Assembly: GCA_001179505.1 (NCBI GenBank)
Contig: CDMY01000027.1
Location: forward strand, 1 to 64,000
Length of the DNA stretch: 64,000 nucleotides
Origin: Vitrella brassicaformis CCMP3155
Lineage: Eukaryota; Protista; Chromerida
Direction of reading: 5' to 3'
Part shown: piece by piece, positions 22,151 to 38,875 of the stretch
How positions within the stretch are numbered: the stretch's first letter is position 1
How the letters are laid out: each line of letters opens with the position of its first letter
Translations under genes and position numbers: made by a program
Notes under the pieces: generated by a model
Databases searched by the model: none
What the model saw: only the letters and a program-made list of their open reading frames with translations
What the model was told of the DNA's origin: nothing

Positions 22151-22534
22151 CATTAGCCAGGGCACTTCTCCCGGTCCTCCTCCCCCCCCCCGTCGTCCCG
22201 TCTCTTCATGTATCACAGAATCACAGAAGGCCAATCGACGACATCGACACAGGTACGCGGCCAGGGCCAAGCTCCCTACGGCGATATGGTACACAAATAC
22301 GAAACTCGACACGCGCTCTATCATTCCTCTTTCTCTCCTTCATGCTTCCACGTCTCGCTCCCTCCCTCCCACTCACCCACCCACCCACCCAGCAGCCAAC
22401 CAAAAATCCGCCCTTGAAAGTGCGTGCACCCATCCCCTCCATTTGTGTATGTATGTATGTATGAATTGTGTACGTACCTATTGTATGTATGTGTACGCAT
22501 GTATCCACCTGTGTGTGTGTGTGTGTGTGTGCGG

Positions 22535-25108
22535 TCAGACATTGATCAAGACCTTGCTCGCCCAGAGGCTGTTACGGCGGGCCACCGCCGTCCGCTGCAG
22601 CAGCGGCGCGAACTGGTTGGCAGCCCCCACATGCTGCGGAGCGGCCATGGGCGCGGGCATCGGCACCGGCATGCTCACGGGAGCGTCGATCGTCATGCCG
22701 GGGAGTGGCTGGGTGCCGTCGTGCAAAATGTCCATCATGTCCGTCAGGGGCGGCGGTGTGAGTGAGAAGGTGGCGGACTCCTGCAGCGTCGGCATCACCA
22801 CGGGCACCTGGGGCGCGTGTTGCAGCGAGGCGAGGGGGAGTCCGGTCTGTGGGTGCCTGGGCACGAAGCCGCCGTCGGGGTTGAAGACGGGAGGTGGGAT
22901 GGATGGAGTGGTGTTGGTCGGGGGCAGCACGGGCAGCATGTGGTCCATCGGCGTCTGCTGCTGCTGCTGGTCGGTCACCACCCTGCCGCCACCGACGCCG
23001 CCCATCATCAGGGCCGGGAAGGCCTCCCGCCCCTCTGCGGCATGGTCCTGTCTCGGCGATGAGTGTTGCGAGCCCATGGGCTCGTCGAAGGTGCCCATGC
23101 CCATACCCATGCCGATGGTCTGGATGGGCTGGACCATGACCGGCGAGGGCGAGGGAGTCGGCGTGAGTGTGGGTGCGGGTGTGGGGCAGTAGCCGAAGGG
23201 CGACGCGCAGGGGGTGGGGCAGCTGCCGGTGAAGCTGTCGGGGGGCGGGATGATGCTGGCAAGAGGTGTGTGGTTGAGCGTGTGGGTGCGCCACAGGTAG
23301 GTCAGCACGGCGCTGTGGGCGTCGTTGCGCACAAACTCGAGTATGCCAAACGCTGAACGATGCACAACACATGCGTGTTGCCTTTCGTGTGTGTGTGTGT
23401 GTGTGTGTGTGCAGCTGACCGTTCCGGTCCGCTGCGAGGTTTCCCAGCATCTCAACCGCGGGCCTGTCACTCGCATGGATCCAGCTCTTGGACAGGGCCA
23501 CCTGGACGTGTCGCAGCGCCTCTTCGGGCTTGATAGGCCAGAACAACGGGTGAGCAGACACCTGCACCAACACATACCGCACCACACAGCACCGATCGAC
23601 CACGTTCCCCCCATCCTCCCCTCCTCTGTATCTGTGCGTGTCTATCTATCTGTGTACCTGCTGCATGGTGGGTCGGCTGTTGGCGTCGTGGTGGAGGAGG
23701 GATGCGACCAAAGTCTTGAACAGCGATTGGGGAGGGCACGCACCGCCCACGAAGGCCGGCTCGTACTCCCAGCCGTTGTTGAGAGTGTCCATCCTGTGAG
23801 CATCACCCACACAACCACACGCACACAGACATACACGTGCACACGAGCGGCTTCCTCCTTGTCCTTTGGCTCACTTGGGGCAGATGGTCTGGGGATTGGT
23901 GGTGTCGTTGCCGAAGGGATGCTCGCCGCCGTTCACGAGGTAATGCAGACACGCACCTACAGCCAGCCATACACACACCATACACACAAGGGACAGACAT
24001 CCATTCTCTCCCTCTCCCTGAGTCACTCGCTACTGACCTGCAGACCACACATCGGCCGTCTTGAAGAACTCTGCCGGCAGCTTGCCGTCATATTGCAGCA
24101 CGATCTCGGGTGGCGCGTGTCGGTGGGGGTCCGCGGCGTATTCGGCCAGCTCAAACAGCATCGTGCGCACCTCGGGCGCCATCCATCTGATCAACGGGGA
24201 CTGACGCAGCTGAACACACACCCACCCACACGCACACACACATACACAGACAGAAAGAGAGAGAGCGGTTGGTGAGAGGACCTGCTGTGTTGTGTGTGTT
24301 GTGCAGGTTACGGCTTTGATGGTATTGATGGCGAGCTCGAGTGCGCTGTGTCCGCCGCCCGTCTTAAGGGCCCTCACGGCCATGTTGAGGACAACGAGAT
24401 TGCCATCGAATCCCAACTGAAACAAAGGCAGAGACAGGCAACACACACAAAGAAGGTGTCACTTGGCGATGGGTATTGTGCTGTGTCTGTGCCACCAATT
24501 GATACCCACTGGCTGACCGTGGGTATGTTGTTGGTGACGCAGAGGCACTGGGGCGAGAGGGCCGTGTGGGCCCAGCCCTGCTCGTGCAGACCCGCCACCG
24601 ACTCGACGAACCCGTTCAGCACACGCAACACTACACACACACACACACACACACATGCATCCCCAATCTCTCTCTCTCTCTCTCTCTCTCCTGTCAGTGC
24701 CCCACGACTCACTCACCGTTGATGCTGGCGCTCAGCCCACTTGTGCCCATCCAGCCCTCCTGCAGCCCTCGGAGCATCGCGTCGTTGCCCAGCAGCAGGT
24801 GGTCAAACCGCGCCGTGACGATGTCCAGGACGGGTGCAGGCGGGCCCATGGAGGCGTGTGGGTGTCCTCCGTTGAGCAGGCCCATCCAGTGGACGCCCTG
24901 CAGCCCGCCCCACTGGATGTGGGTGAGGCTGCCGCTGTGGGTAATGGGTGTGGCTGTCTGGAAGAACGGGCTGGCGAGGTCTTGGTGGCAATCGATGACC
25001 CACTCGTAGGGCTGGTTGTGCTCCAGGGAGAAATGCTGGCACACAAACACAGGTACACACGAAGGGAGGGAGAGATACACCGATTGCGAGCGGGCATGCA
25101 GCCGCTTT

Positions 25109-25140
<32 letters not shown>

Positions 25141-27234
25141 GTGCGTGTGTGTGTGTGTGTTGTGTGGGGGTACCTGAATCATGACGGGCACGATGAATTG
25201 CCTGTTGCCGTTCACACGGCACTCCATGTTGCCGCTGAACAGACTGCAGAAGATGGGACTCTCGTAGACCTGACAGACACTACGCAACGGACACACGACA
25301 CAGTGCATGTGTGTACCTGTCCGGATGTGTTGTGCGCATGCAGTGTTGACAGCCCAACCCACCGGGAGAGGCGAGCTGGTGATGCGCACCGTCCTCTTGC
25401 CGTCGAGCGCCACGGCCATCGGGGCGGACGACCCGGGCCAGCCGCCCACACCCTGAGTGCCTCTGCCCGACACATACGACCTGACACACACACACACACA
25501 CACACACGTGTCCCTTCCTCCCTCCCTCCCTCCCTCTCTCTGTCTCTCTCCCACCACACCCACCTGTTGCTGCCGTTGGATGCTGCGTGGTTTCTGCGGT
25601 CGCGAGGCACGGTGTGGTGGCTCCCTCCCAATTCCAGCGACAGGAATCTGTCGTCGTACACCACCGGCAGAATCGCCTTCACCGCCGAGCGGTCATGGAC
25701 GTTGATCTCTGCGCAGACGCAGCAAACAGAACGGTCGGTGTGGTCGATGGCCGTGTCTGTCTGAGTGTGTGTTGTCGTGCTTGTTTACGCAGGTAGTCGT
25801 TGAGCTCATCAGTTGATGTCGTCGAACGGCGCTCGGCGTCGGAGTGGTCTGCGTAGAATGCAGGTCAGGATTGACGGATGGATTGAAAGAGCCATCTGTG
25901 CGTTTTGCCGTGTGTGTGTGTGTGTGTGTGCTTACAGCAGGGGCAGCAGCCGGGCGGGCACTGGCCGGGCTCATAGGGGCACGGGATCTGCTTGTACACC
26001 TGACCCAAATGCGCACACACAGAGGGAGAGAGACAACTGCCCGTGCGTGTAATTGGGCCGGTGAGTCTGCCTGTGTGTCTGTGTGTCTGTGTGTGTGCGA
26101 GCGACAAGGGGGTGGTAGAACTGCTCCTCCTACAAAGACACAGACAGACCCACACACAACACAAGAGGAGAACATGCACGTGTGTGTGGGTGGGTGGGTG
26201 TGTGTGTTCGTGCCCCCACGCCCACCGCACCCACCCGTGAGTGGCTGAAGTCACACTGGCGCCATCTGCAGGCCCTTGCAGGCACACCAACACACAGACA
26301 GCAATGTACAAGCCACTGTCTGCGCGTGTGTATATGCGTGTATATAGGCAAGCGAGTGGCTGGTTGGGTGGCGTACCTCTGGCAGCTTCTCTCCGTGATG
26401 ACGTCGACGTCATACTGGTGGGACCTGCCATCATCGTCCTTCCTCCAGCGGGACTGCCGCGTGATGGTGATGTGGGGGCACAACTTCGGCTTGTAGGCAT
26501 ACTAATGATGGATGTATCGATAACACACACACACACACACAAACAATCATACCCACACACAGGTGAGTGAATGCACTCGTTGGCCTGCTCACCTTGTGCT
26601 GGTGGTGCTGGTGGTGGCGTGGTGTGCGGTAGAAGTGCCGGTCCTGCTGTGCCGTGACTTCCGTCGGACGACGCAGCCAGTCCGGGCAGTGAGAGAACTT
26701 GCACCTGGAGCCGCACACACCACACAACACCACACAGCACAGCACGGTAGCTACGACTCTTGATTGTGTCTCCCTCCTTTGTCGTGTGTGCGTGTTGGCT
26801 GCCTCTCTGCCCCTCCCTCCCTCCCTCCCTCCCTCCCTCTCTCCCCTCCAATGCAGGTGCTCTCTGCTGCCTACCGGGCGCCGTATTCGCAGACGTTCTT
26901 GTAGCAAAGGGCGCACTTGGCCATGTGGTGCTCCTTGCATAGGTTAGTGTTCCAAATCTGCTTGAGGCTTTCGCCTGACGCACACACGCCACACAACACA
27001 GGTCAGCCAACGCACGCGAACACACACACACACACACACGCGAGACACAGCACACCTACCCCTCCCCTCCTCTCGCTTGTTGCCCTCTGTCCCCCTCTCT
27101 GTCTGTGTGCAGCAGCGTGTGTCTGACTCACATGGCCATCTGCGAAACTTGGACAGCTGCTCCTCTGTGAGCGTCGTGGAGCACCCACACCTCACACGAG
27201 GCGAGGTGCCCGGTTTCCACGTCGGTCCTCGCAT
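22535..27234 (-). CDS. Tandem CCCH zinc finger + IRE1/RNase L-like pseudokinase + truncated KEN-like region + Pro/Gln/Met-rich tail
   Basis: Spliced exons give CALCYKNVCEYGARCKFSH, YKPKLCP..SCQRACRWRQCDFSH and EEQFYHPLVYKQIPCPYEPGQCPPGCCPCYH. The kinase C-lobe reads RWMAPEV..TADVWSAGACLHYLVNGGEHPFG..SRPTMQQVSAHPLFW, followed by ILEFVRNDAH. Stop at 22535. Confidence 0.8.
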
Positions 27235-28216
27235 GGGGGTGGCCGTACGATGACACAAACGACGCAGCAGAGTGGAAAAGGCGACGCCGAGATCTCTCTC
27301 AACGATCGACCTACTCGAGAAGATTCGCGCAGGCGCGCAGGCGCGCAGGAATACGCACAATCAGGTGGCGGGGGCTGCCTGGAAGCTGTCTTGTCGAGTA
27401 AGTTGACTACTCCCAGTGCCCATATGTGATGTATTTTGAGGTGGGGGTTCAGCCACGAGGCCGCGGAAGCGATTGGAGGGTCAAGGAGCACAAACAATTG
27501 AGGGATTCTGCCAGGGGAAGGTCATCGAGGGGGTGATGGGAGAGCCAGGTGTCTCTTACGGGGCAGTAGGCTCACCAGGGGGCTGCAGATGAGAGGAGGG
27601 CGCAAGGGACGTGCGAAAAGATGTGAAGGCTGCAGTGAGCGACAGCTCACGGACACAGAAGAACCAATGGACTGAGCTTGCATGGATTTCACGGTCAAAA
27701 TGCGGAAACTGGGTGCGCCTGCTCAATGCAACGTGAACAGCACGCAGAAGGGCCTTTAACACGTGAAGAAAGGACGAAAAACCCTTGAGAACGACATACT
27801 TTCGAGCCATTCAGCTGCACACAAGCCCATCGCTGCCTCGAAAGGAGCCTCAAGCAGCCCAGGGTGTCAATATTGTGCTGCACTGAGTGCTCACAGGAGC
27901 AGAAAGCGATGGGAAAGCGCATCACAGGAAGCCCAACTGCATTTTTGGGTCCCTAGAGAATTGGGGCCACATAACAAGCGGTTCTCTGTTGCTCCCGTCG
28001 CTAAAAAACGCTCTCCTCGGCCGCTGGGATGCGCAACAAGGCGTTTTTTCTAGGGCCCCTCGACTCACGGGATTCCAAGATCGGGTCCACGCGAAGCGCC
28101 CCCATCCATCCGTTCGACCCCCATGTGCATCGCGTCCGCCAAATGTCGTGATCGAAAGCTGCACCGGCGTCTGTGCGACAGCGATACATGAGCCTGGCAT
28201 CAGAGGACTAAACAGC

Positions 28217-31200
28217 ATGCTCCTGACAGCTTGCCTCGTAATTGGTAGGCATTTATATGACATCTGAGTCAGCTCTCTTCCCTCTCCTGTCTGACGAAAA
28301 GAATGTCCCGTGTCTTACAGGAGGCATCCTGTTGCGGCCTTGCCAGGGCTCCACCAATTATGGAGAGCCAGCTTTCCCAGACGAGTGGATCTTCAGACCT
28401 TCATCGTGTTCCGTCAGTACAGGATGTATGTGTTGCGCTCTCATGTGTCCTTTTTTCCTTCTCTTCCACTCATTAGTACTACTACTACGACCCCGACGTG
28501 GAACAGAGCTTCGACAACGCGCAGAGCTCGTGTTGGAATACAAATACCTCCATGAGCGGTGACCTGGTAAGGTGAGGTGGAAGTCTTATGTATATCCCAG
28601 TCCACTTCCGTGTGTATGGTTATGCATGTCAGCTGATCGTGGACGACTCATATGAAGCTCAATGGGTCGCGGATCAGATCGTCTCGGCAGGCGACCACGG
28701 CAAGAAATTCTGGGCAGCCTTCAAACGAGTACGCAGACCAGTCAGGACGTTTATCGATGACAGCGTGCTCGTATCGGCCCTTTTCGCGCTCAGCACGGGG
28801 TTACTCCTGACGGGGAGCCCCCCATTCTGCCCGAAGTAGGAGGGACCAAAGCAGGTCAACTGACATGCATACTCCATGCATACATACACGCGTACATACC
28901 CACGGAGACACCATGCGCACCCCCTTGTTCTCGTTCCCGGCTTTTCTCTGTGTCAGATCGCCATGGTTGGTATCCGGCTGGCGAATGGGAGTGGACCTCT
29001 CCGTCGAGAGGGTTATGGGATATCGCATGGAGACCTCGTCAACCTTGGGACTATAATAAGGGTCGTCAAGTTGCTTCCACATTGATATCGAAAGCACGCT
29101 GCTGTGACCTGATGTGCTTGAATCTTTTACGTCAGATTATGGGCGCGTCGACGTCAGGAAAATCGAGTGGGAGGAACCTTGGTATCAGAGGAGCCAACAT
29201 GCTTCTGCTTTGTCTGGTACCATTTGAAGCCAATGATCATATTGCAGGCGGCTGGCGCTCTCCACGAAGGATCCTGGAAATGACAATCGAGCCATCGTAA
29301 GCGACGGAGACGCCATCGCTCCTGGAAGCAATCTTGTCACAATGTGCTGCTCCTTGTGCTGCTTTTGATGCTTGAACAGTGCGAGAAGAAGCTCAGCGGC
29401 TGCAGTAGGAAAGGAAGAACACACACATTTTTACCCCTATTGCATGTCTCCCTTCGTTTGTGTAGCCGAGCACCCCACTGTCATGATAACGACACCCACG
29501 AGCTTTCCCGACCCCAAAAAGAAATTCGTCGACGTAACCCTGACGTTCTCGGATGACATTTCCGACCTCACCTTTCCAGATTTCTCCGACTTGACAAGCT
29601 GGCAATGTGCCGGCGGGGTAAATGCGGCGATAGAGGGGATCAACTATACGAGCAGCAACGTGATAGAGGAGAGGCTCTGGCCCGTGCAGCCAGGCTGGCT
29701 TACGCTCCACGTGCCCAGCAATGTTTTCACTCGCACCAGCGACGGGCTGCCCAACACTCCATCAAACACACTCATCGTGTACTCGGGTGCGTATCACAGC
29801 AGGCTTTGCAGAGGGACTTGTATAAGGGACATATGGTGAGCAGCGTATGTGTGTCTGCCAGGCTGCAACACGACTTGGGGCTCGAAAAGATCGACCATCC
29901 CAATGGCAAGTGACACTGCTTACTCCTGGTGGCATTGCGGTAAGAGGTCAAGACATTCTTTACCTCTACGGGCCTTCTCGCAATCTGATTCATTCCACGT
30001 GTCAGGTCGACTCTGCTACGATGACCCCACGTGTGAGATGTACGCGTTCGACGCTCAGACGGGAATCGTCGGTGGAGCGGGGGGTAACCCAGATGCAACA
30101 GACTGTCTTCTCTACGGAGACACAGGCGATGCGGACATTCCAGCTGGGAGCATGATAACCAGCGTCAGGACATGCGCCACCAAAACCGGTGAAGGCGGCT
30201 GGAAATCAGACAAACGAGACATAGTTGTGTATGCGTCGTCTTTGTTGTCGATCCAGACACGCAACCGCCCGAGATATCGTTCGTACGGAAGATCGATCGT
30301 CTTGGGGATGAAGAAGACAATGCTGTGCCCGGTGGGGCCATCTTCGTCAATTATGACAGCCAAAACAACGTTCAGGTCGTGACTGAACTCCACTTCAGCG
30401 ACCTAGTAGAGAACGTCGACCACAGCGATCTCGAAATCACATGGACAAATGGCGGATCATCTGGCTCTGTGAGCTACACGGTCGACAACGTTGTCCTGGA
30501 AAAGGTTTTAAAAAGCCCGCCGCCTTCATGGGACCAAGAGCTAGGAGAGAAGCCGTCCAAGAAGTATAGATTTCAGGTGGAAAACGAGCAGGGCACTGCA
30601 AAAACATTCCTTTGTTTTCTCTGCGGTGTTGGTATATGTTGATAGCTTGCGCTCGTCAACAAGCCTGCATGGATCACCGCGGCCAACGTCACTATCGGGC
30701 TCAAGGGGTCCTCCGACATCACCGATTACTCAGGCAACACCATCAGCCCATCGCATGAGCCCATCACCTTCGTTATACGGCCTAGACGTGAGAAGCACAG
30801 GTGGAGAGACAGAGACAAGCGGGCACTCTTTGTCTTCTGTCATGTACGCAGCGTGTGACACGATGAAGATACTGAACGACACCGACCTGGCAGGAGGCGA
30901 TCTCATTCGCTACGGGGGATTAAAGGATATGACGTTTGAGACCTGTGCAGCCAAGTGCCGAGTGCTGCCAGAGTGTGAGGGCTTCGCCTTTGGAAAGTCT
31001 TCTGACAAGTGCTATCTCAAGTGGGGCAGCCAGGAGATGGGGGACAAGGGGTGGCAAGAGCTCACGTCAAAACCTAACTTCGACTCTGCGTATTTCGACT
31101 GCTCCTGTGCGGCGAACTGCTTCGGTAATCGACCATGTCTGTTCTTTTTGCATCATTGACGCATCTATGATCCTGTGCATTGCTGCCTCGCTATGTGAAT

Positions 31201-34200
31201 GTGTTCATCGATCAGAGGTGCCGTTGCCTGAGATCTGCGGCGACTTTGTTGTGGTTGGCGCCGAAACCTGCGATGGTCTGCAATCGCTTTCTTGACGCCT
31301 GACAAAGTGTCTTGACGCCTGCAATCGTTTTCTTGTTCCTTGGACTCAGACGGGAACACTGCGGCGGGCGACGGATGTTCAGAGACATGCCAGACAGAAC
31401 CAGGATGGACATGCCCCATCCCAGGAGAGCCTTGCTGTAAGCGCATGACAGGATGGCAGCGATACACTCATTCTTGTGAGCTCTCTGCTGGCTTGCATGT
31501 ACCTTCGGTCGCCAACCTCAGTTCTTGTGACGACCACGACAACGACATTGCCACCGTCGACAACCGCCCAACCTCCGCCAGCAACCACGGCTGCACCGAC
31601 CACAGGCGCTGTTGTCCCGTCAGTGCCCACTGCACCGCCGACAATAGCCCCTCAGCCAGAAACTTCCACGACGGAGCCGCCAATGGCGCCCACAAGTGAG
31701 TGAGAAAGATACGCGAGAGGCACAATGAACGTCGACCGGCTGGCTGCTGCTGCCTGCGTGTTTGTCTTTAGCTGGTGCGCCTCCGGTGGTTGCCCCGCCG
31801 GTGGACGTGGACGATGTCACAGACAACCTAGACGATCTCAAAGTGATTGGCCCCAACCGAGACACGAGACACTTGCATCGGTCCATGTATGTCTCATGTG
31901 TGCGCGTGTCTCTTTCACTTGTTGCAGAACCAGGATGCAGTTGACGTGTCGGATGCAGAGGACACCATCGGCGGTCTGCTGGGCGGTGAGGGCGAGGAAC
32001 CACCCACACCGCCGCCCGTCGAGTCTCCCAACGACTTCAGCTCTCGGCTCCTCAAAGCCATCAACGTCGCCAAAGTGGCCCGCAAAGAGGACATGGCCGG
32101 GCTGGCAAAGCCCAATTCCACACAGGAAGAGACCAAGGCACAAAGGAAAGCCGTCGTGAAGGCACTCATGCGCAACCTGCAAAAGGTATATGACGACACG
32201 CAGACAGGCAAGGACAGCACCCAATTTCTCTGTCCTGTGTGCGGCTGGTCAGGCTGCTGTCGATCGGTCGACAAAGTTGAGTGATGTGTCGAGCAGCCCG
32301 GCTGAAGTGCTCTTGTCCGCCGTCACGCTGGTCACCACCGTCGAGACGGCCGATGAGACAGGTACGGCGCGTAGAAAGGCCACAAGATCACCTGGCCGAG
32401 GTCTGCATCTCTTGTATCTGCAGAGAACGACGACATGGACACGGCGGAGGCGGGCGTCGCGACATTCAAGGCTCTCGCGGCCGTCTCGGCGGACACCATC
32501 TCCCAGCCCGACGACACCCCCGCGAATGCCGTCAAGGAGCTGCAGGGCCTTCAGTACTATCTCGATGGGGCGGCCGGCCTCCTCAGACAGCTCAACAGGA
32601 CAGCAAAGGCGGACCGACACCTTCGGCGGCTGACACCGGCTGCCAACGAGAGCTATCACACGTTGTCATCTGATATCATCGGCACCACAGCCCAGCTGGC
32701 CGACAGCCTCGCCACACGCGCAGCCGCACACTCAAACGGCACGGCCGAAGTGGCGGGCGCCAAGACGCGGCTGAAGGTCGCCCGCACAGACACGGCCAGT
32801 GGGGCCACACTCACGATCAAGGACACCAATGTAGTTGTGGACATGCCTTCATTGCCATCCATCCCGCCGGCCGTGTGCGCCGATGGTGGCGGGCTGCGCG
32901 AGAGTGTGCAGATGACCCTCTGGGCCGACGACCCATACGCTTATGCCGCTGACGAGGAGCCAATGGCCGACCTGACGGCCAACGACACTCTCACGAATGC
33001 AGCGCAGGGCACTTTGGCTGTGTCGGCCCGACAGTGCGGCAGCGACCTGCAGCTGACGGCGGGTGACGGTCAGCAAGAGCCCTTCCGGCTGTTCATCCCT
33101 CGCCCCTCAGCTGACAGCGTGCCGGCGGCTGGCAATGTCTCTGTCAATGGGACGGAGAGGGCGTACGACGTCCATGTGGTGTGCGGCTTCTGGAACACAT
33201 CGACGCACCAGTGGGACACACAAGGTCAGCCATGCACACGTGTGGCGCACGGATCAATCGGTCGACCAATGAATCAACGGGTGTGTGTATATGTGTGTAG
33301 GCTGTCAAGTGAATTTGGCTCTGTCGAATGAGACGACCCTCTGTTGCGAGTGTACTCACCTCACAGAATTCTCTTCACTCTTCAGGTCAGCTGACGTGAC
33401 ACACCCAGGCCATGATGCGTGTGTGAGTGCTTGCATTGTGTCTGCAGGAGTGTGATTGTTGACAGCCACATTGCAGGGGTGGTGGGTGGAGCTGGTGACT
33501 CCCTCGCCAGGATGGCCGACATCACCGCGTGGACACAAAACATAGCCGCCTTCTTCGTGTCGATAATGATCGCCATACACTCCACTTGTCTGCTGCTGTC
33601 TCTCTACTTCGACTGCAAAAACCCGTAAGCACACAAAACATGAACCACAACCGTCGTTGCTGTTCGTTGTCGGTTCGTCAGTATCACTGATCAGCTCTTG
33701 TTGGACATATGGTCAGTCAATACACAGCGCACCGCATCATTGTGTTCTGAATTTGTTATCCACCTGTGTGATTGGTTGGTTGTTTCATCAGGATGACCGA
33801 TCCACTGCTCGAGTGGGGACACCTATACATGTTTACTGTGTATATGCACCAATGTTCTCACTCTTGTTCTGTTGTCTGCTGTGTGCCGGTTGTCGCGACA
33901 GCACACGACACAAAGCCGTAAGCACACTCATGCCTATACCAACGGCAGGAGATGGACTCACATTCCCTTCGGTCTTGGTCTTCATGCGCAGCGGTCGAGA
34001 TTGCAGCGCAGCATCAATGGTTGTGTCGGCCGTCGGTGCTATCACCCCTGGTGGTGCGACTTCCTCGTCTGCCGCATCTTCGGCGGCATCTACATGCACT
34101 GCCGAAACAGAGAGCCCACTCTCCATCTCCAGGAACTTCGGACACTCAGGTGAATAAAATCCCGTAACGGAAGACATGCCAGGCCATGAGTATTTGTCTC

Positions 34201-37518: not shown

Positions 37519-38875
37519 TCACATCCCCTGCCCATTCCGTCTTCGATGATTGAGGTTGTTCTCCCTTGGCGACACCCAACGAAGATTCGCACTCCGATTA
37601 TCGCCGGGGTCGCCATTAATGTGGTCGACTTGAATGTAGCGAGGATCATCTATCCCTTCGTTCTGCAGCCTCTGCCGCAGGGTCTCCTTCGCCTTTGGAT
37701 GAAAGACTTCAGCAACCAGTCGATGCACAAGATAGTCCCGTGGGCGCAGCTTGACAATCCTGTATCCGTCAGGACGATGGCAACCCAGAGTTTTCCTCCC
37801 GCTTTTGAATCGCAATGGGTTCTCGCTGAGTGCACGTATCTCTCGGTCGGTTTTTTGCCCCGTTGAGAGTTTCCTCGGTCACGGGGCGCCATTTCTCCCC
37901 TTCCAAGTCGGGCCGTGCTCTCTTTGAAATACATAGTGTACCGCAAAGCTGCGCATCTTTGATGGCTTTTCGGATACCATCCGCGCTCATGCAGATCTTC
38001 TCAGCCGCTTCTCTCATTGACGGATACTCTCGGACTTCACCGGTGTTCCCACAAGTGGCAACGACTGAAACAGCACACGTAAGACCGCCGCATCTTCGGC
38101 TTCCGCTCTGATGGCTTCTCTTGACATTTTCGCCCTGTGATATCCATTCGAGATTATCCATATGGTTGTTCGTCTTGTTGGCATCAATGTGGTGGACGAC
38201 TGGGTTTTTTCCCGGATTCGCGTCGAAAAATGCCTGCTTCTCTTCAGGCCTCCAGACTTCAGCAACCAACCGGTGGGCATGCTGCGCCTTCCCCCTGCCC
38301 GCTGTCACCTTAAGATACTTTCCCCTGCCCGCTGTCACCTTAAGATAGCCATATGCTGTCTTCTGTCCGAATGTCCTGTAGCCACTTGGGTACTCGAACT
38401 CACCATGTTTGGACACGTTCAGACAGGCAAACGGAGATTCTTCCAGTCCCTTGATGTCTCCAACTTTTCGCCAATCATCATCATTCTGTGTCGTTGCCGA
38501 GTCACGCTCAGCACCAAGGTACGTGAGACGAAAGCAGCCAAAGAGCAGCTGCTGTGTGGCAAGGATGCGCCCGACGTTTCCCAAAGAGACGCCAGTAAGA
38601 TGAGCAAGATGTCCAGCAGAGCGGACGAATATGGCTGCCCCTGTCCGGGTGTCCTCGACCCTCAGCCACTTGGCCCAAGTCGCTCGACAGTTGCTCCTTC
38701 CCGTCCAGCGCTGCTGCCCTGCTCTGAAAAGAGCCTCCAGCTTCTTTTGCTTCTCGAGCCACTCAGCAGCGGGGACGCGATATGAACGACACTGCGTTGA
38801 TGAGGAACCGCGGGGTGCGAACACATCAGTGAGAGCCGCGGCAGCCCGGAGATGGGTAGATGGCGACTTGGGCAT
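37519..38875 (-). CDS. Intronless double HNH (HNH_3/NUMOD4-type, with NUMOD1-like HTH) endonuclease, split by a +1 frameshift at an A6 run (plus-strand T6 37851-37856)
   Basis: Module 1: WRKV..VSKHG..GYLKV..HRLVAEVW..HHIDANKTNNHMDNLEWISQGEN. HTH: REYPSMREAAEKICMSADGIRKAI. Module 2: EKWRPV / RFKSG..DGYRIV..VHRLVAEVF..DHINGDPGDNRSANLRWVSPREN. Confidence 0.85.

Follow-up and report, generated by a model that had tools for sequence, protein, structure and literature searches.

The stretch of DNA analysed here, referred to as the window, comprises positions 1 to 64,000 (64,000 nucleotides, forward strand) of contig CDMY01000027.1 in assembly GCA_001179505.1 of Vitrella brassicaformis CCMP3155. The host is a chromerid alga, that is, a free-living relative of the apicomplexans and not an apicomplexan itself. 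On the minus strand, the region from ATG 27234 to a stop codon at 22535-22537 can be modeled as a gene of 19 exons with an open reading frame (ORF) of 954 residues. We favor, with slightly better than even confidence, the reading that this is one gene for a soluble protein of ~950 residues, in which CCCH zinc fingers are followed by a dead IRE1-type kinase, a vestigial stump of the KEN nuclease domain and a proline-rich tail, and which would act as a non-catalytic regulator. Most likely, the product is a relic of an unusual sort, and a new enzyme that cleaves RNA is not what the locus encodes.

The exons were assembled from the three-frame translation of the minus strand together with a reading of the DNA itself, and 18 of the 18 introns in the model have GT..AG ends (Table 1). 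An earlier first-pass annotation, made from the letters of the sequence, had described the locus as an RNase L-like architecture with three CCCH fingers, an Unkempt-like linker and a degenerate IRE1-like kinase. All of the motif, linker and finger strings that it quoted were recovered by three-frame translation and motif mapping, each on the minus strand and in its reported place. Its claim that the protein has neither a signal peptide nor a transmembrane segment also held, the maximum hydropathy over a 19-residue window being 1.14 and the N-terminus being polar.

Two runs covering the stretch proved to be spliced and hence RNA-derived, and their contigs were used as transcript evidence. Spliced contigs confirm exons 12 to 19, which make up the kinase half of the gene. 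Six minus-strand introns are present in them (23353-23419, 23562-23657, 23794-23875, 23957-24037, 24210-24311 and 24417-24517), and intron 24631-24716 is confirmed by the layout of one contig, for a total of seven. A single contig of 1598 nt extends from exon 14 to 130 nt beyond the stop codon; it spans exons 14-19 and thus places the C-lobe of the kinase, the segment behind it and the proline-rich tail (~240 residues, 18 % Pro, all in exon 19) on one mRNA.

Table 1. Exons of the modeled minus-strand gene and the overlapping plus-strand transcript (window positions; LLR, log-likelihood ratio of the codon model)
Feature	Position	Strand	Remarks
Exon 1 and proposed start codon (ATG 27234)	27132..27234	-	First ATG of the open frame, donor GTGAGT; N-terminus FRRWPC...
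Exons 2 (26875-26974) and 3 (26593-26704)	26593..26974	-	CCCH finger 1, whole only after splicing
Exons 4 (26377-26501) and 5 (26235-26265)	26235..26501	-	Atypical CCCH finger 2; RNA contigs unspliced at this intron
Exons 6 (26106-26129), 7 (25936-25999) and 8 (25789-25848)	25789..26129	-	Linker and CCCH finger 3; codon LLR positive in each
Exons 9 (25564-25708) and 10 (25363-25480)	25363..25708	-	Finger-to-kinase linker; exon 10 uncertain; donor 25363 present in RNA
Exon 11	25174..25269	-	Start of pseudokinase N-lobe; codon LLR +28.9
Exon 12	24717..25035	-	Remaining N-lobe and hinge, ~35-residue insert; linked to exon 13 by an RNA contig
Exons 13 (24518-24630) and 14 (24312-24416)	24312..24630	-	Degenerate catalytic loop and DFG site; introns 24417-24517 and 24210-24311 in spliced contigs
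Exons 15 (24038-24209), 16 (23875-23956) and 17 (23658-23793)	23658..24209	-	C-lobe with WMAPE, DVWSAG, GGEHPFG and SRPT; all introns in one 1598-nt RNA contig
Exon 18	23420..23561	-	End of kinase (AHPLFW) and ~40 residues (..ASDR..); boundaries RNA-confirmed
Exon 19	22535..23352	-	FGILEFVRNDAH, then proline-rich tail of ~240 residues, stop 22535-22537; contiguous in RNA contigs to 22405
Antisense spliced transcript over the zinc-finger half	25053..27600	+	Introns 25053-25242, 25733-25791, 26689-26856 and 27002-27112; GT..AG joints, contigs of two runs

Residues 1-200 consist of CCCH fingers and their linkers, with units of the C3H1 form C-x6-14-C-x4-5-C-x3-H. Finger 1 reads C-x7-C-x5-C-x3-H and is split over exons 2 and 3, while finger 3 reads C-x6-C-x4-C-x3-H and is split over exons 7 and 8; finger 2 is atypical in that it ends as C-x5-C-x3-H with its first Cys 30 residues upstream. 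An intron interrupts each of the three fingers, which become whole only through the splicing predicted by the model. The linker EEQFYHPL|VYK likewise crosses an exon junction, that of exons 6 and 7, where the donor of exon 6 (GTCGCT) is weak. A Pfam scan of the exon ORFs gave no match to ankyrin repeats, and no RING motif was seen in the gene model.

The arrangement of fingers and linker invites comparison with Unkempt, which possesses two clusters of three CCCH fingers (six in all) with conserved linkers, a disordered region, a coiled coil and a C-terminal RING, and which has no kinase. A finger with a long first spacer is followed in Unkempt by H-x-x-E-x-x-F/Y-H-P-x-x-Y-K and then by the next finger, and the layout of the present protein presumably resembles the second of these clusters. 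Compared to Unkempt with its six fingers, coiled coil and RING, the present protein has three fingers joined to a kinase fold.

Whether the finger exons are coding was assessed by codon usage, with the RNA-confirmed exons of the same gene as the training set of the codon model. For the spliced finger coding sequence the LLR was +50.9 bits in the frame of the gene model, and it was negative in each of the other five. Furthermore, the GC content at third codon positions (GC3) is 0.815 in the finger exons and 0.847 in the RNA-confirmed exons. Exon 9 scored +14.9, and exon 10 in the model frame has a GC3 of 0.87 and an LLR of +5.7; an alternative exon 10 with its acceptor at 25452, which fits the RNA junction described below, was rejected as coding (GC3 0.62, LLR -22.5). 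All splice variants tried stay free of in-frame stops from exon 9 into the kinase. If the kinase were an ORF of its own, it would have no sensible start before the N-lobe, the lone candidate lying inside a microsatellite-derived stretch. These results support the prediction that the CCCH exons are real coding exons in the same strand and frame chain as the kinase, and we infer that the fingers and the kinase are parts of one protein.

The lineage of the kinase was assessed with IRE1 references: a degenerate pattern at the DNA level, designed on the KEN helix, retrieved 116 metagenome loci, from which 35 non-redundant kinase-plus-KEN slices were cut. A profile of these 35 genes matched residues 429-643 with 46.5 bits, and hhalign against the IRE1 profile returned a probability of 98.9 %. 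A sub-profile of the late C-lobe was built from subdomains IX-XI, where the catalytic motifs give no help, and it scored the protein at 41-44 bits, above all 47 giant-virus kinases of the outgroup (maximum 35-38, median 4-5). In pairwise comparisons, annotated green-algal and plant IRE1 proteins matched the same region with 23-31 bits, nearly all of them stopping just past HPLFW. The profile match stops there as well, at HPxFW, where the kinase domain of IRE1 ends in 35 of the 35 references. The strings WMAPE, DVWSAG, GGEHPFG and RPT..QVSAHPLFW are present; APE, DxWS, GxHPFG and RP..HPxFW are kept in the profile alignment, with the GxHPFG loop and the terminal HPxFW in register with IRE1. The view that the C-lobe is distinctly IRE1-like was thus borne out. 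In a tree with the 35 IRE1 sequences, the protein falls at the base of the IRE1 clade or as its sister, with a Shimodaira-Hasegawa-like approximate likelihood ratio test (SH-aLRT) support of 89, in a comparison whose outgroup consists of viral kinases and in which RNase L is absent.

The catalytic motifs have decayed, as the first-pass annotation had also proposed. The strings HTALSPQC, NMA and VPVMIQ are all present. In the profile alignment, the catalytic loop HRDLKPxN has become HTALSPQC and DFG has become NMA; hhalign, at low confidence, places VPVM at the beta3 VAVK and finds no glycine loop. Two other assignments, of RQFIVPVMIQ to strand beta5 and of GRGTQG to the glycine loop, were dropped, as hhalign placed these strings otherwise; GRGTQG, which lies in exon 10, falls upstream of the aligned kinase domain. 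Having lost its glycine loop, the lysine of beta3, the aspartates of HRD and DFG and the catalytic asparagine, the domain would not phosphorylate and probably would not bind ATP. We conclude that it is, as predicted from its sequence, a pseudokinase of the IRE1/RNase L type.

A shortened KEN-like segment had also been proposed behind HPLFW, with ILEFVRNDAH as the counterpart of the nuclease helix and its His at R+4. The string and the position of its His were found as described; the likeness to KEN was not sustained. KEN profiles gave no match beyond HPLFW, and the tail without HPLFW obtained an hhalign score of 10.1 compared to a shuffle mean of 10.8, with 176 of 300 shuffles scoring as high. 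The block for the RNKxHH helix reached -1.7 bits, which is not significant (362 of 2000 shuffles as high), and the PDGF/RFP block of KEN was not significant in the tail either. A marginal signal came from the SDR block of the first KEN helix (12 of 2000 shuffles as high, p 0.006) and from a profile of the N-terminal half of KEN built on 144 sequences (p 0.02-0.04), and one pairwise alignment to an annotated IRE1 extends to residue 686. Nucleases of the HEPN class carry an Rx4-6H motif in which the His is essential (PMC3710099). The RNDAH of the present protein is Rx3H, R+5 being Ser, and ~75 residues lie between HPLFW and the proline-rich tail, compared to ~130 for a KEN domain (PF06479). Furthermore, the catalytic Tyr of IRE1 lies 13 residues upstream of the Arg, and the present protein has no Tyr there.

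Because the KEN profiles are silent, the motif is Rx3H and the segment has ~75 residues, no more than one or two helices from the start of KEN would survive, the catalytic half being gone or unrecognisable. The ~40 residues of exon 18 that follow HPLFW may be the vestige of these helices. A remnant without the catalytic Tyr and the histidine of Rx4-6H would have no RNase activity. Between the two functions considered in the first-pass annotation, a dead-enzyme regulator of mRNA is the one favored here, and a cytosolic RNA-sensing nuclease appears unlikely in the light of the unsupported KEN domain.

Taken as a whole, the protein might work as follows. First, the three tandem CCCH fingers in their Unkempt-like layout would bind RNA. 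Second, the kinase fold, of IRE1/RNase L descent, would provide a scaffold or a module for dimerisation. Third, the KEN remnant, at most ~75 residues and putatively descended from that domain, would contribute no cleavage, and the disordered proline-rich tail of ~240 residues could recruit partners. The protein would then act as a non-catalytic regulator of the mRNAs that its fingers bind.

Several observations weigh against this reading, in both halves of the gene. In the finger half, no RNA contig of the two runs joins zinc-finger exons to kinase exons, and none of the nine predicted junctions upstream of 25363 is present in the contigs, that of exon 1 included. The contigs over this half are spliced only on the plus strand and retain the minus-strand introns. 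The one minus-strand intron seen at the border, 25280-25362 (junction 25363|25279), uses an acceptor 10 nt upstream of the in-frame one; it frameshifts the best coding model and leads to a stop at residue 407. Exon 1 shows no coding signal (codon-usage score -9.1), which leaves the start uncertain, and searches of solved structures with single exons returned nothing; RNA binding and the likeness to Unkempt are read from the motifs. In the kinase half, the support for the place beside IRE1 falls from 89 to 43 when the tree is built with 63 IRE1 sequences, and the protein sits on a very long branch of 2.3-3.3 changes per column. The outgroup of both trees was limited to giant-virus kinases, with RNase L and the broad eukaryotic kinome left out, and the N-lobe is aligned at low confidence only.

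The points from the finger half would be explained if the locus made two separate products or were partly non-productive, with a kinase transcript that starts at ~25400-25700 and lies head to head with the one on the plus strand, the ORF of the fusion being a model artefact or a minor isoform. Such a reading accounts for the fact that all 3' junctions were seen and the upstream ones were not, for the plus-strand splicing of the finger-region contigs and for the frameshifting junction. It is harder to reconcile with the finger exons, which carry the codon usage of the gene in the model frame only and whose fingers are completed only by predicted splices. A finger-only gene would run stop-free into a junk extension of ~170 residues, and a kinase-only ORF would have to begin in the microsatellite-derived stretch mentioned above. 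In places with both sense and antisense RNA, contigs also lose the less common variants; the unseen finger-kinase junction is therefore an absence of proof and not a proof of absence. Moreover, CCCH fingers fused to a kinase-KEN module are already recorded in the literature (PMC3710099). We give this explanation about one chance in five: it is unlikely, though the strongest of the alternatives. That the finger-kinase fusion is real, with the 25279 acceptor an alternative one, we hold to be quite probable, and the acceptor itself is probably that of an unproductive splice. Two acceptor AGs lie 10 nt apart at window positions 25269-25281 (minus strand), and the upstream AG is the one used in the RNA contig.

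The points from the kinase half could instead mean that the domain did not derive from IRE1/RNase L at all and belongs to another group, as a rapidly evolving pseudokinase whose HPFG and HPLFW strings arose by convergence. The unstable tree support, the long branch and the narrow outgroup sampling leave room for this, as do the searches with single exons: Pfam on ten exon-level ORFs gave no kinase, KEN or CCCH match, the pieces being too short, and no kinase emerged when single exons were compared with the PDB. Against it stand the late C-lobe, whose score on the IRE1 sub-profile exceeds those of all outgroup kinases, the end of the match precisely at the HPxFW common to the 35 references, the GxHPFG in register, and the string LHEQG...H ahead of the catalytic loop, which green-algal IRE1 also has. 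A convergent origin is in our judgment rather improbable. Two giant-virus kinases that came to lie near IRE1 in the larger tree were dismissed as long branches without any family motif. A mixed MAFFT alignment of IRE1 rows with the window exons scattered the fragments and was not used as a query, since genuine IRE1 sequences would dominate the matches, and the global mode of hhalign was uninformative. A HMMER search of a large protein collection with exons 14 and 15 returned one low-complexity junk match, and a word search with the last ORF returned nothing; the control, an HNH ORF of the window, is itself absent from that collection, so these blanks do not show a lack of relatives.

A more ambitious proposal is that the alga has a small family in which the kinase-nuclease module was freed from the membrane of the endoplasmic reticulum and coupled to RNA-reading fingers, and that this copy or a less eroded paralogue works by RNA-induced dimerisation of the pseudokinase and perhaps cleaves RNA. 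We regard it as rather improbable. If true, steering by zinc fingers would be a third independent way to control the IRE1/RNase L module, after lumenal sensing and 2',5'-oligoadenylate (2-5A) sensing. Least probable of all is an active minimal RNase guided by the fingers, that is, a compact HEPN-like nuclease using the R and H of RNDAH and activated by pseudokinase dimerisation: RN..H does lie ~45 residues after HPLFW, on the KEN side as in IRE1, and a weak residual likeness to the first KEN helices exists, yet the Rx3H spacing, the missing Tyr, the shuffle tests and a remnant of ~75 residues that passes into a Pro-rich low-complexity stretch all argue against it.

Compared to IRE1 (Ire1p/ERN1), the protein in the favored reading of a finger-pseudokinase fusion shows a kinase C-lobe that can be aligned throughout, including GxHPFG and the terminal HPxFW, a place next to the IRE1 clade in trees, with unstable support (89, then 43), and a short stretch after HPLFW that faintly recalls the first KEN helices. 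IRE1 differs in that it has a signal peptide, a lumenal sensor and one transmembrane helix, whereas the present protein has no membrane segment or lumenal domain; all of its catalytic kinase residues are replaced, it has no detectable KEN and no Rx4-6H, and in their place it bears CCCH fingers at the N-terminus and a tail rich in proline.

RNase L offers a parallel in that it is soluble and places a sensor domain ahead of a pseudokinase of the IRE1 lineage. Its ankyrin repeats bind 2-5A, and its pseudokinase still binds nucleotide. As described, RNase L has an ankyrin sensor and an active KEN; in the present protein the sensor would be the zinc fingers, and the nuclease is missing. In RNase L, the KEN domain is complete and active, with Rx4H (PMC3710099).

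Green-algal IRE1 proteins also commonly carry CCCH fingers (PF00642) in the same polypeptide as an IRE1-type kinase, and LHEQG..H before the catalytic loop is common to both. About 20 of the metagenome IRE1 ORFs (e.g., L034, L047, L066 and L077) have one or two PF00642 fingers C-terminal of KEN. When one of the metagenome ORFs was compared with the database, the majority of its best 120 relatives combined PF00069, PF06479 and PF00642, among them proteins of Chlorella vulgaris, Volvox, Auxenochlorella, Micractinium and Coccomyxa. In these proteins, however, the fingers follow KEN (PF06479), which is intact, as is the kinase (HRDLKP, D[FM]G), and there is a lumenal part, whereas the present protein has Unkempt-like fingers at its N-terminus and two enzymes that are dead or lost.

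Should the fusion be real, it would indicate that an IRE1/RNase L-type module can persist on a soluble protein that binds RNA, purely as a scaffold and pseudoenzyme. It would also add to the record of IRE1 diversification and decay among alveolates and provide a candidate post-transcriptional regulator. Apicomplexans have been described in reviews as lacking a canonical IRE1 (PMC13076163). No new nuclease mechanism is implied, as CCCH with kinase-KEN is already recorded and the nuclease is gone here.

The plus-strand transcript over the finger half runs towards a polycystin-like gene, the next one to the right (28217-33385, plus strand), and is probably a leader of that gene or an antisense RNA. 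No plus-strand ORF was found over the finger region, and a plus-strand gene there was rejected for this reason.

Nearly all introns of the minus-strand gene (window 22400-27100) contain (AC)n/(GT)n or (GGGA)n microsatellites, because of which spurious His-Thr, Cys-Val and Arg-Glu stretches appear in ORF lists; they also caused the sole match in the large protein search. Within the proline-rich tail, residues ~920-935 (window ~22590-22620, minus strand) include ..AANQFAPLL.., which we take to resemble the A-x-x-F-x-P half of the PAM2 (PABP-binding) motif near the C-terminus and which may be due to chance. Elsewhere in the window, positions 37769-38875 on the minus strand hold an intronless HNH-type ORF of 368 residues, the control mentioned above, whose best database relatives are 25-44 % identical and include an HNH endonuclease of Cladocopium goreaui.

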